A stretch of 45,833 bases of DNA from Hyphochytrium catenoides (Eukaryota; Protista; Hyphochytriomycota), in contig FLMG01001412.1 of assembly GCA_900088475.1 (NCBI GenBank), positions 1-45,833 on the forward strand, in the 5' to 3' direction. The notes under the pieces were generated by a model, which worked only from the letters and a program-made list of their open reading frames with translations, was not told the origin of the DNA and did not search any database. Positions 475 through 36,378 of the stretch are shown piece after piece (position 1 is the stretch's first letter; every line of letters begins with the position of its first letter). Position numbers and translations under genes: made by a program.

Positions 475-3400
475 ATGGCAAGAACAAGTCAGAGATATGG
501 CTTGGGCAGTAAACCACCTTCCAAAAGCTTCAGTAGGCTCCCAAGAAAGAAGCCAGCAGCCCATGACTTCTCTCCTTCTGAACCTGTACCAAGGTTAGGC
601 CAGAAGTCTAGCGCAATGTAGTCTAGTCCAGACAATCAGTAACTTCTTCTCCGTCATTTACCTATTACCTTCAGGGTAGCCCCAGCTCCTATCTCATCCG
701 GACTCTCCTTTCGCTCTCTCCCAGAGCCAAGCTTCAGACAGGTCAGACAGAACCCCGCTATAGTCTTGGGCGCAGGTGTAACTGTTCCATTGCAGATACG
801 GCGAGCCTGCCAGTTTTATGAAAAGAAATGTGCAGGCAACTATGAGGAGAGAACAAGTCCTGCTGCTGCCAGGTCAGTGGTCCTTCCGGGTGATCAAAAC
901 CACCGAAAAACCACCTCCTTTCGGGTCGGGTTACGCCCTGGGGTCCTCCTTCTCAAGCGTCACTCCTTTCTGACATCCCATGGCTCTTACTTCGGGCGCC
1001 GGTCGCCTACTTCTGACCTCCAGGTTTGCTGCCGCTCTCTCTGTACCTTCTGCTGCTAGATATGTCTTTGCTTTATCAAGAGAAGTGCAGTCCGTCTTAG
1101 ACAGAGTGGAAGCGAATGAAATCTCAATGAAGAAAAGGCTCAAGGAAATGGAGGTGTGTCTACCCTTAGGGCCATATACTCTGTCCTCGTGGGTCCGAGC
1201 TCCTTTCAGCCTTCACTCATGTTATGTTTCTTGCGCTTGCCTTTCTCTCGTTCTCATGCTTGCCTCTGCCTACAACTGTCTCTTCCTCTCTCTTATTAGA
1301 CCATTACCAAGGACTGGAACGACGCCTTTGGTCCCGACAGCAACTGTGGGGTAAGCATGGCAGCCCATCATTGATGGACCCTTTGGCCGAGTCACGCTGA
1401 ATGTTGGACGTGTCGCTCTAGGTCCAGCTGGGAATTGGATGCATTCCTGTGACACCTTCCTACTTAGCTGGCCTGCTAAAAGAGCTAAAGGCGAAGGTGG
1501 TGAAACAGCAGGAAGACCTGGATAAAGTTAATAGAAAGCGAGGTGGGGCCCGAAGCCATTGCCATGTATAAAGATACCTGCTCACTGTTTATACCTACTT
1601 CTCTAAATAATGCTCCAGAGGAGGAGGCTGAGCGTTTTCAGCGGTCTGCCTTTGATCTTCGCTCTGAGCTCGAGTTCAAGCAAAACAAGCAGCTCCAAGG
1701 ACTGAAGGTTGGCTACAGCAGGCACCTTTAACTCAAGGTTCAATTGGAGTCAGGACCATTAACTCTCTCTCTTTTTCTAGGATGAGTATGAAGCCAAGTT
1801 GCGCGAGGAGGAGACTAAGTATGTGTCCAAGATGCTCGAGCTTAACGAAAAGCACAAAAGACAGTGCAAGGAGTTCGCCAAGGAGAAGGTTCGGCTCGTT
1901 CACTCTATCAATCACTTCTTGGATCATCCTCTTTTGCAAGCCGGCCGTTCTCTACTATGTTGGTTTTGTTTCGGCTTTTTGCGGCTTGCTCTCCTTGGTG
2001 GCTTGAGGTTCTGGCTTTCCTGGTGCTTGTGTAACACCGTGTCTCTCTCTACATGTACTGATCATGTCCAACGTGAATGTGCCATCGGGATATGCTTTCT
2101 AAAGTCTATCTCTTGAACAGGAGAATGAACTTAAAGAGGTCATGGATGACTATGAAGAGCAGCTGCGCTTAATAGAACTTAAGACAGCGAAGCAAGAGGC
2201 TAGCGAGAAGATGAATAGTGTAAGCAATAGCTTTGACAGTACGCAATACATTATCTTTCCTCTACCTAGACACATTCTCCCTTCAACAACCATCTTTTGC
2301 TCTCTCTCTCTTTCTATTCCTCTATTGGCTTTTAGTCAAGCTTTTACGTAGTTTAAAGTGTGGGTCTGACGGGAACGTCCCTAGGTTGCTCCTCCGGTCA
2401 TGAAGGACAAAGCTACCCAGGTCACTGGTCGCAGGCGATCTATACCCAGGCAGACGGACACCCAGACAGGAGGCCCATTGCCAAGGTAAGGAGGCAGAGC
2501 CACCTCTTTCTATAGTCGGACGGGTGCCTGCTGTCTAAGCTGTTGACATCCAACTTCTCCTTTGTGTTCACATGGTATCAATTCTAGAGAAAGTCCTCGT
2601 GAAGGCCATACGACCACCCGCGATGCTAGTTCCTTTGCAGGGAAGATAGACAATGCTTCAAGGTCAGAGGTTTGAAGTCGTCTCTAGGTCAAAGCGTACA
2701 CAATGTCTCACCTGTTTTTTATCAACCTTCTCGGGATAACGCAGAGAGGAAACCGCTTCGCTCTCATCCAGACCATCAAGACGTTTTGCAGGTCCACAAC
2801 CGAGCCTTAGTGGGCGTTCATTTCAGTCTTCTTCGACGCAGCATCTCCATGGCGGTGACAATCAGCGGAACGATCCTCAAGAAGTCAGCAGCTTCTACTC
2901 TTTGGGAAGTATCAGTCAACCCCGAGCTATTCAAAGCGACGATAGAGCAGAGTCTCGACCAGCCCTGACGAAAGTAGTGGAGAAAGAGGCGCAGGAAGAA
3001 GACGAGGAAGATGATCTCTTAGGTTCCCCAACTCGGCGGTTTGAGGACGACAGCGAAGATTCCCTTTTGGAGAGCGAAGGTCTCTATGATGGCACTGAAG
3101 TCACTATAGCGCCTGAGCCACGATCGAGGAAGGAAGCCAACCTACAGGAGGAGGTGAACGCGTTGAAGGTGATACTGTCCATTACGGTCACCTTCTGAAG
3201 ATGTCACATCTAATTCTGTGGGCCCTGCGTTTTTGCTCTCACCAAGGATAAGATGGAGGCAGCTCAGATCGAAAAAGACTCAATTTACCAAGAAAATCTA
3301 TGGCTCAGATACAAGGTTGGCGGTAAGCGAGGGATAATTAACTTGATAGGCGGGGAGAAACCCCACTGAACTCTATTCTGGACAGAGCTCGAGAAGATTA

Positions 3401-3651
3401 TTTCTCTGCTTCAAGCGCATCTTCACCCGTCAGGGAGCCCAGGCGTTGACGTCCACAACGAAGGTAAGGGGATCTACGAGGCTGACCTCTCTCTGACCCT
3501 AACTTTCCCTCAAATCTCTCCAGCAACGAGCGAGCATAAACCAGCCCGCAAAGCCTCGCGATCTCAACCGCTGAACTTTGAAACGAGCTGGAATAGGCCA
3601 CATATGACACCTGAGGCCAAGGCGTGGCGCGAGTCCTTACGCCCACAATAA
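475..3651 (+). CDS. Multi-exon coiled-coil hypothetical protein
   Basis: Manual GT-AG splicing keeps frame from MARTSQRYGLGSKPP (ATG 475) through FAAALSVPS..EISMKKRLKEME, DEYEAKLREEETKYVSKMLELNEKHKRQCKEFAKEK, EVMDDYEEQLRLIELK and NLQEEVNALK to ..WRESLRPQ-TAA (3649-3651). E/K/L-rich heptad-like composition. Start and some middle junctions are uncertain. Confidence 0.6.
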
Positions 3652-30658: not shown

Positions 30659-32964
30659 ATGGATCCAAAGCGGATCCAGGCTACAGGACGTCCTGGCCCC
30701 ACGATACTCTCCACACGAGGTGGGCAAGGAGGACGTAATACTGCTATGCAGATGCTCCTATTTCTGCTACTCGCAACAGTGCTTCAAGGAAGAGAGTGCT
30801 TTGGACAATCTGCTTCTGCAGCTAGCTGTTTATCAAAAGGTGAGCGCCGGAATCTGCTGTTGTTGCGCAGGAATTGCAGTGCCGTAACCTCCTGCCGCAC
30901 GCATTCCCCTATCACCGCCCCTACTTCTCTTAGCCCAATCCTCCCCTGCACAGCCACAATGGTTGCTCTTTCTGTGATCACTTCAGCTAGAAGCTTTACC
31001 TCATTCCTCTCTCTCCTTGTCTCTTCCACATCTATCTTGACTCAATAATGTCTACTGTTATGTTAACGTACAATGACTGTTCGACAGCTTCAGTGTCCCT
31101 GGTCGGATCCTCCGTTAGCGCGGACCCCGAACTGAGATGCCTGGTGTACAATGGGAAAGTGTTCATGAAACTGGACTCTACGAATCATGCTGTTGATTTG
31201 GCTAGCGATACTCCTGGCGTGACTTTGAGCTCCGCTTCAGGAACAAAGTCTTCAACTGCTGTGACCCCAACGCCTGGCAACGCATCCGCCAAAGAGGGAC
31301 AAGCTGGGGAAGGAAGAGAAGAGTCTTCGTCTTTTGAAGGGGATGGCAAGAACGAGAAGAGGAAGGGATACCTTGGTTATGAGACCCAGTGCGATGGCGA
31401 GGTAATCACGCCTAAGTGTGACCTGGAGCTGTTCTTGATCTATCTTGGCTCTGCCATTTTCGTGATCATGATGGCCGGAGTGATGGCAGGGCTTACAATG
31501 GGCTTCATCTCTCTTGACAAAATGAATCTGCGGATTCTTCAGCTCCAGGGAAACAAGGAGGATCGGACAGCAGCGAAGAGAGTGTTGGCGGTGGTGGGGA
31601 GGCATCATCTCCTCCTTGTCACGCTACTCATTTGGAACTCTCTAGCCAACGAGACCCTTCCTATTGTGCTGGATCGGCTCTTTGATCCAATAACCGCTGT
31701 TATTATCTCCATGTCTTGCGTGCTGCTCTTTGGTGAGGTGATCCCCTCGGCTATCTTCACGGGCCCAAGACAGCTGTACATCGCTGCAAGGATGGTGCCA
31801 GTCATAGAATTTCTTCTTATCGTCACTATGCCCATAGCTCTCCCTCTTAGCAAGGGTCTGGACTATTTGCTGGGCACTCATGATATCACAAGGTATAATA
31901 GGAACGAGCTGAAGGCCCTCATCTCTATTCAAAAAGAAGTTTTTAGCGATATTGAGACGTTGCTAGAAGATGACTCAGAAGAGCAGGACAGCGACAGTAC
32001 GAAGCGAAGGAACACGCACCTCGAGGCATCTCTGCTTGTAGAAGAAGTGAACATCATCCATGGAGCGCTCGACCTGGCCACCAAGAAAGTGAGAGACATA
32101 ATGATTCCTTGGTCCAGCTGCTATACGCTGGACACGAAGACCACGTTGGACTACAAGATAATGAGTGAAATCCTGGCCACCAACCATACGCGGATTCCCG
32201 TCTTTGAAGGTGACAAGAACAATGTCCGGGGGCTCCTAATCACCAAGCAGCTAATCATCGTGGACCCGAATGAAAAGGTCAAGACGGATTCTCTTACTAT
32301 TATTCCTGCTCTACGCGTCCATCCAGAGGACGGGCTATATCATGTCCTGACTGTCTTCGAGCAAAATAAATCCCACATGGCCCTGGTCACGCAGGAGCCA
32401 GAGTTGGTTGGAAGGCTATGGGCAGGTAACCAGCCCCTTGATCCCAAACAGGTGACGATTGAAGGCATTATCACCCTAAATGACATCATCACCGAGCTGA
32501 TGCGGAAAGAAATACTTAGTGAATCTGACCATCACCGAATCTCTTCGAAGATCTCTAAGGTCTTTATGCAGAAGCATGATAAGAATCAGCCAGATGCGCA
32601 GCTAAAGCAGAGGAGAAGCGCCAAGGAGGCACCAACAGAGCGTTCACCGACAACACAATCTTCTTCAGGCGACGTTGCGCACAGGCCGTCCGACGGCAGT
32701 CGGGGCCCCTCCGATCGAACAGTCTCGATTCTCACTCACTCAACGCAGAGCGCTCTCTCTACGACCACCACCGCGACAGGCATCGCGCGGCAGTCGATAG
32801 ATGGGAAGAAGAATAGCCCTCTGGAAGCTTTGGGCATTTATTCGACCTCGAGTGGGACCGATAGTACCACGAATGGCATTTTTTTCTCGAAAGGCGGGAT
32901 GTCCAGTGCACAAAGCGGCATGTCTTCCGATACAAAGCCTCTTCTTGGAACCAAAACGCGATAA
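30659..32964 (+). CDS. CNNM/CorC-type metal (Mg) transport protein: DUF21 plus CBS pair, with N-terminal signal peptide
   Basis: AGVMAGLTMGFISLD, HHLLLVTLLIWNSLANETLPI.LD, VLLFGEVIPSA, YNRNELKALI, IIHGALDL, HTRIPVFE, SHMALV and GIITLNDII. Exon 1 carries MQMLLFLLLATVLQG and joins in frame over an intron at about 30840-31088. Confidence 0.95.
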
Positions 32965-34399: not shown

Positions 34400-36378
34400 A
34401 TGAGCAGGAATAACCACTTTGCCGCTGATCTTGGGGAAGAGGCAGGGCTAGGTCGGATCGTGAGTGACGATTTCCTGACAGACCTACCTCTGGGCCTGAT
34501 TGACTCATGCCTGTACAATGAGCTCAACTATGATGGTCAGCCATCCGCTGCACCTAGCACTTATGCCGGGTGTCCGCAAGACTTACTCGGGGATATTAAC
34601 GTAGCTTTGGGATACGGTCGAACTCACTCCCCTACTACTGTCCCTATTAGCGGCAGTACAGCCCATGAGCAAGCTCCAGCTCCACAGCCTGGAGTATTCA
34701 GTGGGCCCGCCAACGGCAATGTTGGAGACTCAAGGCCCAAGAAGAGGTTGGAGGAGGACACCTATGAGCGTAAGAAGGACAGGGCAAAGTTCTCTCGAAA
34801 AGAAGTGAAAGACCGCTTTGAAGAACTGTCAAAGCTCATCGAAGCCCCTCCAGGTTTGTTTGCCACTTGTTTGGACATTTTGAATGCACTAACCGCTGGA
34901 TTGCACCGCATGGGTCTGTCATCCGTCGTTGCACGTAGCTTATCGAAGGGCAAACAAAGCCAAACTCATCGAGGCCACTATTGAGTATATAACCAAGCTG
35001 AAAGCACGACTAGCTCGGGCGGAAGATGAGGTAAGCTTGACAGTGTGGATGCATTCCAAACCTAACGACTCTCATTAGCCCATGACTTTTCACCGTCTAG
35101 TTATTAGGACTTTCATCCGTTCAGTGGCTTAGTCTCAGATTGTACTCATGACTTCGCACTAATTTCCTCTTGATATTGCAGTTATGTCAACACAAGGAGG
35201 TTGACGGCAGCACATCTTCGACTAAGGTTGTCACACAGAAGGTTGCAGTGGTTCCTGCCTATGCGCCTCAGAGCCATTCTACTCCAGTGATGATGCTGTC
35301 TCCTACGACCCCTGGAGGAGTCTGGAGCCTACGACCCTTCCTCAACCTCCCCTCTCACCCTATTCTTTCCCCTCAAATGCAGTCTTCTCCTCTCTCTTTT
35401 GATCCTAAGCTTTATGGGTGCCCGCCTGCTGGAAACAACGGCAATATAGTGCCAAATGTCGTTCTTGGGCCAACTACAAGAGACGATACGATGCCGCCGC
35501 AAAGCGCAGCCGGCAGGAAGCGTCCATTGCGAAGTTTTGGAACTCCAGAGAACGGGGTCGTGGCAGCCAGGGAGCATCCTCACTTATCTCTTATAATGGA
35601 GACGTTCTACGTATTGAGCCTACTGGACAGCGTGACACTTGCAAATTGCACTAGAGTTAACCGTCATTGGAACCGGCTCTGTACCAGGAACTTTATATGG
35701 AAAGGTCTCTGTCAGAGTCGATGGTGCTGGAGCGCGGCAGATCTGAAGAAGGCGAAAATCAATCGTTACATCACGCTGTACGGCTATCTTCATGAGACGA
35801 TAGAGCCTCCTAAAACGTCCTCTTACGAGCAGGAGCTGAGCGCCTCACCTGTCTTTGCCTCGGGTCGGGCTGGGGTAAAGGTGGGAGGCTGGCTCTTCCT
35901 GGGCCACAGGTCAAACAGCCGAACACTACGGAGTGTTATGGTCAACGGAGCCCTTAGGACGATGGAGGTAGTGGAGCTCAGGCTTCTCGTCCAGAATCTC
36001 AGCGATGGCAACGTTGACTTTGACCTATCTTCCCTGGCTGTAGCTGGAGCCGATACTCCTTTCCAAGTCCTTCTGAGCTCAGATCTCTTCCAGCCGCGAT
36101 TTGTCTCCCATACCAGAGGGTTTACTTCTCCTGTTCTCACAGATAGGAGACGGTGCCCTTTAAGGGCTTACGAGACAGGGGTTATTAGCTTCTACGTGCT
36201 ATGTCCCGGATCTGAACTTGAGATAGACTTTCTCATGAAAGCTCACGTGGTTCAGTGCAGCTTCCAGTTCAGCTCTGGTATGACAGGAGAGCCAGAGGAT
36301 GGTGTCTTAAGATGCCAGTTGCCAGACGCGGCCAGGCTCAGAGAGCTGTACGGCAGCGCTTATTTGTTGCCTAAATAG
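34400..36378 (+). CDS. bHLH-like plus F-box fusion protein with an uncharacterised C-terminal beta-rich domain
   Basis: Three exons: YERKKDRAKFSRKEVKDRFEELSKLIEAPP|AYRRANKAKLIEATIEYITKLKARL (helix-loop-helix), then VLSLLDSVTLANCTRVNRHWNRLCTRNFIWKGLCQSRW (F-box). Both introns are GT-AG and frame-preserving. Confidence 0.82.

Follow-up and report, generated by a model that had tools for sequence, protein, structure and literature searches.

The window analysed here is a 45,833-nucleotide stretch of Hyphochytrium catenoides DNA (contig FLMG01001412.1). At 34400-36378 of its forward strand, to which all coordinates below refer, lies a three-exon gene for which predicted splicing keeps the reading frame intact and gives a single protein of ~580 residues. 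Three open stretches are found in this interval: an ORF that starts with the ATG at 34400, a short stretch in another frame that contains NKAKLIEATIEYITKL, and a 398-codon frame that runs from 35182 to the stop codon TAG at 36376-36378. Exon 1 (34400-34853; 151 codons plus one base, ending in phase 1) encodes the acidic N-terminus, a low-complexity region, a basic motif and helix 1 of a helix-loop-helix (HLH) domain; it is defined by the ORF and its translation, and its 3' part is matched by 19 homologues in tblastn searches. Intron 1 (34854-34938; 85 nt, GT..AG, CAG/GTTTGT...GTAG/C, phase 1) falls inside the HLH loop and is required for the frame change into exon 2 (34939-35030), which supplies the last part of the loop together with HLH helix 2 (NKAKLIEATIEYITKLKARLARAEDE) and was placed by alignment and by BLASTP against helix 2 of the homologues P0015 and P0005. 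Within intron 2 (35031-35181; 151 nt, GAG/GTAAGC...TTGCAG/T, phase 0) the frame of exon 2 meets a stop at 35076 and that of exon 3, stop-free after 35149, is open only from 35152. Exon 3 (35182-36378) ends in the TAG.

The exact splice junctions are predicted from the sequence. Enumeration of all GT..AG pairs identified other frame-compatible ones, several of which would likewise retain both HLH helices, and the pairs chosen for introns 1 and 2 have the best consensus sites. The original prediction had proposed the same joining by splicing; all of the peptides that it quoted were found in place, and with the predicted junctions the frame is preserved across the three exons. The resulting working gene model is supplied for a genome that carries no annotation. 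In the upstream neighborhood, a 638-codon ORF (31048-32964) matches the CNNM transmembrane domain at 92.9 bits and, weakly, CBS, and probably encodes a CNNM/CorC-type Mg2+ transport mediator.

The N-terminal half of the protein is of low complexity and contains two short recognizable elements upstream of the basic motif. The first is the acidic-hydrophobic motif VSDDFLTDLPLGLIDS (34460-34507), which, judged by eye, resembles activation-domain motifs; counterparts of this motif (DDFLTDLPLGLID), namely TFLDDLL, AFLDELL, MDDLLALG and LEDLLDF, are present in the N-termini of homologues, again as compared by eye and with no statistics attached. The second, GYGRTHSPTTVP (34610-34645), aligns in tblastn to GFG(G/K)(N/T)HVVPSVP of the metagenomic homologues P0024, P0028 and P0039. 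On the other side of the HLH domain, exon 3 begins with a Pro/Ser-rich linker (35182-35577), which is evident from the translation, aligns weakly with the homologue linkers and is probably disordered. Both the acidic N-terminus and the Pro/Ser linker of the original prediction are present in the translated protein.

The basic motif YERKKDRAK and HLH helix 1 (FSRKEVKDRFEELSKLI) occupy 34763-34840, as delimited by the homologue alignment and by tblastn matches with E-values down to 5.8e-08. When 19 longer homologues were compared with the window by tblastn, each of them matched exon 3 as well as the 3' end of exon 1 (34751-34849, motif YERKKDRAKFSRKEVKDRFEEL). The motif common to exon 1 and these proteins is (N/A)YERKKxRAKxxRxx(L/V)NxxFxxL; its residues Y, E, R, K, K, R, A, K and R hardly vary over the 19 homologues, and the window protein retains all of them. 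Exon 2 matches helix 2 of the stretch recognized as HLH by Pfam in the Globisporangium homologue P0015 (BLASTP E 4e-07, 48% identity) and in the Phytophthora homologue P0005 (E 6e-07).

A Pfam scan for HLH with exon 1 alone or exon 2 alone gave no match at E-values up to 10. Because intron 1 splits the domain, this result was not counted against the HLH. Seven of the 40 relatives (P0005, P0007, P0011, P0013, P0015, P0019 and P0021) score 29-33 bits and pass the cut-off of the Pfam HLH family (PF00010, 20.7 bits), and the Aphanomyces astaci homologue stays below it with 16.4 bits; in all eight proteins the HLH lies N-terminal to the F-box or the beta-sandwich domain. Comparison of a profile of the homologue HLH region with solved structures retrieved SREBP-1a as the best match (E 9.4e-05), as well as Max, E47/TCF4, MITF, ID1 and Cbf1. 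The AF2 model of residues 35-115 of P0015 (pLDDT 86.9) contains two helices, 2-36 and 47-71, corresponding to a long helix formed by the basic motif plus helix 1, a loop, and helix 2. Its best Foldseek matches are MITF, TCF4, ID1 and MYC2, with target TM-scores of 0.6-0.73 and E-values of at least 0.31, which are not significant, a result to be expected of a domain this small. The predicted HLH of the window protein, which was part of the original prediction, stands by homology: both of its helices align to proteins that pass the Pfam cut-off.

The name bHLH under which this domain was first described holds for the HLH part and fails for a canonical basic part. In bHLH proteins, the glutamate at position 9 of the basic region contacts the CA of E-boxes, and E-box binders read H/K5-E9-R13. 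Positions 5-9-13 of the window protein read K-A-R when counted back from the Pfam and SREBP alignments, the latter of which begins only at position 11-13 of the basic region. Glutamate is absent from position 9, which is occupied by alanine in the window protein and by an invariant alanine in ten aligned homologues; the lysine at position 5 and the arginine at position 13 are retained in the window protein and the homologues. Judged from these residues the basic region is non-canonical, and classical E-box binding is not expected since the glutamate that reads the E-box is replaced by alanine.

The F-box (35578-35724) consists of three helices and was identified by Pfam, by a family profile and by superposition of its model. 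Among the Pfam families tested (PF12937 and PF00646), the F-box-like family matches residues 143-178 of exon 3 at 29.5 bits, above the cut-off of 24.3 bits. The exon 3 sequence matches solved F-box proteins at E 2.5e-06, and the family profile matches solved F-boxes at E 1.6e-12, with the match confined to the F-box part of the solved proteins. Superposition of the model gave Z 8.9 with Skp1-bound Fbs2 (rmsd 2.9 over 72 residues), Z 7.9 with FBXO31 and Z 7.7 with Cdc4. Thus, the F-box named in the original prediction scores above the Pfam cut-off and has a three-helix fold that matches Skp1-bound F-boxes. At the N-terminus of the F-box, no LPxE(I/L) segment can be recognized: the window reads HLSLIMETF, the Pfam match begins at profile position 11, and a helix is modeled there. 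Many working F-boxes do without LP.

An AF2 model of 35569-36375, built with an alignment of 40 relatives, has a pLDDT of 88.9 and a pTM of 0.87. It shows the F-box as three helices, followed by a linker of another three helices, a beta-sandwich of ten strands and, last, a closing helix. The stretch of the linker helices (35734-35844; AF2 helices 56-61, 67-76 and 85-92) aligns to mouse FBXW12/19/21/24. The Ig-like beta-sandwich with its closing helix (35851-36363) forms a block with pLDDT mostly >90, in agreement with the ~200-residue beta-rich C-terminal domain expected at the outset. Its conserved positions include W237, RSNxxTxR at 243-250, VVELRxxVQN at 263-272, in which Q271 and N272 are invariant, and CPGxxxExxFL at 341-351. 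Of the 41 positions that are most conserved in the family, 39 are retained in the window protein.

The identity of the sandwich among known domains was addressed by sequence and by structure. No Pfam family, including ApaG/DUF525 and FBA, matches it at E-values up to 10, and no solved relative was found by sequence. Structural matches are generic and Ig-like (Z 6-8), and include YcdA, the gamma-adaptin and COPI ears, the ApaG domain of FBXO3, and PDIP38. Foldseek and VIA-align single out no sandwich family; an ApaG domain such as that of FBXO3, with Z-scores of 6.5-6.7 within the crowd of unrelated Ig-like sandwiches at Z 6-8, and a gamma-adaptin ear were considered and not adopted. An Atlas feature search with the C-terminal part returned only the family's own F-box cluster (score 0.76); the Atlas shape search returned the same cluster (TM 0.64), the remaining matches being bacterial DUF11-type sandwiches below 0.4. 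We presume that the sandwich is a substrate-binding domain. Solved F-box proteins such as Fbs2 and FBXO3 likewise place a beta-sandwich C-terminal to the F-box.

A word-index protein search with exon 3 found no relatives. An exhaustive search of 1.84 billion representatives identified 40 relatives at E-values up to 1e-3, with alignments that span the F-box and the complete C-terminal domain. The 19 longer homologues come from Phytophthora, Nothophytophthora, Pythium, Globisporangium, Lagenidium, Aphanomyces and Saprolegnia, from the ochrophytes Chrysoparadoxa and Ectocarpus, and from several metagenomic eukaryotes. In every one of them the basic motif is located upstream of the F-box and the sandwich, and the oomycete ones have a Pfam-scoring HLH. 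The closest known systems are these uncharacterized oomycete and ochrophyte homologues, for example those of Phytophthora cactorum/aleatoria (KAG6968301.1), Globisporangium ultimum (K3W9N4), Pythium oligandrum (TMW59945.1), Lagenidium giganteum (DBA03418.1), Aphanomyces astaci (XP_009833665.1), Saprolegnia parasitica (XP_012204464.1) and Chrysoparadoxa australica (CAM9407337.1). The oomycete and ochrophyte proteins share with the window protein the acidic motif, YERKKxRAK, HLH, linker, F-box and beta-sandwich in this order, with 25-34% identity over the F-box and sandwich; they differ from it in the conserved asparagine of helix 1, which is a lysine in the window protein, and in the loop, which is one residue longer in the latter.

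By these alignments, the window protein is a member of a conserved, uncharacterized stramenopile family. The original prediction had placed the acidic N-terminus, HLH, linker, F-box and beta-rich domain in one protein, and it had treated this fusion as a one-off. The architecture is upheld and recurs in oomycetes, Chrysoparadoxa and Ectocarpus, so that the fusion belongs to a family rather than to a single gene; its conservation in many species indicates that it is not a gene-model artefact. In databases, the relatives appear as hypothetical proteins or under the automatic names 'BHLH domain-containing' and 'F-box domain-containing'. A full-text literature search that included homologue accessions, with incomplete coverage and hence no proof of absence, found no paper on the HLH-F-box architecture and returned only papers on plant immunity or on diatom bHLH-PAS proteins. 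The architecture is new to the literature and is already in databases as hypothetical proteins.

The one-gene structure is most directly seen in Phytophthora aleatoria, in which, in contrast to the intron-split HLH of the window, the HLH and the F-box are in a single ORF. At the locus of P0005 (L001, JAENGY010000244.1), one uninterrupted ORF at 1501-3402 encodes residues 1-447 with the HLH at 164-211 and the F-box at 379-413. This indicates that both domains belong to one polypeptide and stands in for RNA evidence. In the deposited model of the same gene (L001 1501-3561), the first intron follows residue 447, is 81 nt long, in frame and free of stops, so that the ORF 1501-3402 is continuous; it may be a genuine intron or reflect a decision made during annotation. 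It is a coincidence that the ORF and the annotated protein have the same length, 633 residues.

Shorter relatives with the F-box and sandwich only, and no HLH, were found as Saprolegnia and Aphanomyces paralogues and in pelagophytes, an ochromonad and the rhizarian Amorphochlora. This distribution makes the unit of F-box and sandwich the older module and the more widespread one. In a tree of this unit, an oomycete clade with the N-terminal HLH module is supported at 96/93, and an ochrophyte-like clade that keeps the basic motif at 94/91. The deep forks have support of 51/41 and the window protein is on a long branch; since the tree leaves both unsettled, a single origin of the HLH-F-box fusion is possible.

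Several database entries depart from the common architecture. The Nothophytophthora sp. protein P0013 (RLN47666.1) has an HLH at 192-239 and a sandwich from 273, with no Pfam F-box match, and helix 2 is truncated in the deposited models of P0027 and of Saprolegnia P0002; these incomplete architectures are probably gene-model errors and not biology. Some strain annotations of A. astaci (P0044 and P0046, 730-742 aa) join the homologue to a DM10-domain protein, probably by merging neighboring genes. A metagenomic subgroup (P0016, P0020, P0024, P0028, P0034 and P0039) keeps AYERKKQRAK and replaces the usual helix 2 by a region that ends in an invariant KKWDRP(S/A)FV; these six proteins have N-terminal extensions of 290-470 residues.

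Comparison with known systems identifies counterparts for parts of this architecture. bHLH factors and F-box proteins are normally separate, and SCF receptors meet bHLH factors in trans at promoters, as is the case for Met30 with Met4-Cbf1, Skp2 and Fbw7 with Myc, and Fbw7 with SREBP. The Met30, Skp2 and Fbw7 systems differ from the window protein in that they comprise two proteins and use WD40 or LRR substrate domains, whereas the latter is one chain. KDM2A and KDM2B (FBXL11 and FBXL10) have a DNA-binding module on the same chain as an F-box and bring Skp1-containing complexes to chromatin. The family profile matches the F-box of KDM2B at E 5.6e-07, the only part in which the two are homologous: the KDM2 proteins read DNA with a CxxC zinc finger and not with an HLH, and have JmjC, PHD and LRR domains and no beta-sandwich. 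FBXO3 (F-box, SUKH, ApaG) and Fbs1/Fbs2 (F-box, FBA sugar-binding sandwich) share with the window protein the succession of F-box, helices and a beta-sandwich substrate domain, and are among its structural matches (Fbs2/Skp1 Z 8.9, FBXO3 Z 8.1, FBXO3 ApaG domain Z 6.7). However, they have no HLH, and the window sandwich matches theirs no better than it matches gamma-adaptin ears or bacterial lipoproteins. With SREBP, Max, E47 and MITF the family shares helix 1, loop and helix 2, the usual hydrophobic pattern, the lysine at the end of the loop, K5 and R13. It differs from them by Ala in place of Glu9, Asn or Ser in place of Arg12, an extra invariant Tyr-Glu just upstream, the lack of a long zipper, and the F-box in the same chain.

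The reading that we favor, with confidence that is about evenly balanced, is that the protein serves as an SCF substrate receptor, dimeric through its HLH and guided by it to DNA or to HLH partners. Skp1 of the SCF (Skp1-Cul1-F-box) ubiquitin ligase would be the docking partner of the F-box, and the beta-sandwich would hold the substrate. Besides joining two receptors into a dimer, the HLH would place them either on DNA, via the invariant basic helix YERKKxRAK, or on other HLH proteins. Ubiquitination would then be aimed at chromatin-bound or HLH-associated targets. Recruitment of SCF to HLH partners or to chromatin, or else self-degradation, had been put forward in the original prediction as functions that the protein could have. 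The DNA-binding step is putative given the missing E-box glutamate, and the basic run could simply be a nuclear localization signal.

This last point leads to the most serious competitor, which we regard as possible and as clearly the less probable of the two. The HLH could be a dimerization device only, like the D-domain of Fbw7, beta-TrCP and Cdc4, with YERKKxRAK as a nuclear localization signal, and the protein would be an ordinary dimeric nuclear F-box receptor that is never on DNA or on other HLH proteins. The invariant alanine at position 9 of the aligned homologues is consistent with such a role, as are the ochrophyte-like homologues that keep the basic motif with a degenerate helix 2 and no Pfam HLH match, and KKKRAK-type runs resemble classical nuclear import signals. 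However, no part of the N-terminal half is as well conserved as the basic motif, whose nine nearly invariant positions go beyond the needs of an import signal. Moreover, the homologue model joins this motif and helix 1 in one continuous helix, as in DNA-bound bHLH proteins, and K5 and R13 are retained.

We consider it improbable that the protein is mainly a transcription factor, with an acidic activation motif and a bHLH, in which the F-box and sandwich are a built-in turnover or licensing module that recruits SCF to the factor itself, so that it is destroyed while acting. F-box proteins are often auto-ubiquitinated and the potency of activators can be coupled to their destruction, as exemplified by Skp2-Myc and Met30-Met4; the acidic-hydrophobic FLxDLL-type motif common to the homologue N-termini would fit this scheme. 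Nevertheless, the strong conservation of the sandwich (invariant QN, RSNxxTxR and CPG) and the presence of the F-box and sandwich without an HLH in Saprolegnia, Aphanomyces, pelagophyte and Amorphochlora paralogues argue for an independent substrate-binding role.

There is very little chance, in our estimate, that the F-box binds Skp1 outside a cullin ligase, like yeast kinetochore Ctf13 or Rcy1, and that the protein is a structural factor associated with DNA or chromatin: F-box/Skp1 complexes of this non-SCF type are known on DNA and the F-box N-terminus is degenerate, but nothing specific supports this role, and the best matches by sequence and fold are ordinary SCF receptors. We reject as close to refuted the view that an adjacent HLH gene and F-box gene were joined by imagined splicing, which could appeal to the several alternative GT..AG pairs and to the predicted nature of the splicing, given the 19 homologues from different lineages in which basic motif, HLH, F-box and sandwich follow one another in the same way, the uninterrupted P. 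aleatoria ORF, the lack of a start codon context for exon 2, and an exon 3 frame that opens only at 35152.

A bolder, speculative proposal can be formulated, which we put forward as doubtful. The HLH of the family may bind DNA in a sequence-specific manner by a new recognition code (K5-A9-R13 plus the invariant Tyr-Glu), with the SCF docking site and the substrate trap built into the same protein, i.e. a single-chain, promoter-tethered ubiquitin ligase receptor conserved across oomycetes and ochrophytes.

The fusion of an HLH and an F-box described in this work is real, conserved and unstudied, yet it is made of familiar parts. The unnamed beta-sandwich with its invariant QN, RSNxxTxR and CPG is a new candidate substrate-recognition domain. 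Members of the family occur in major pathogens of plants and animals (Phytophthora, Pythium, Aphanomyces and Saprolegnia), in which the control of transcription is poorly known. If both functions are united in one conserved chain, nature would have provided an experiment in which a ubiquitin ligase is tethered to DNA or to HLH partners. If the proposal of a promoter-tethered receptor is true, such a protein would mark chromatin-bound partners at defined loci or couple activation to its own destruction.
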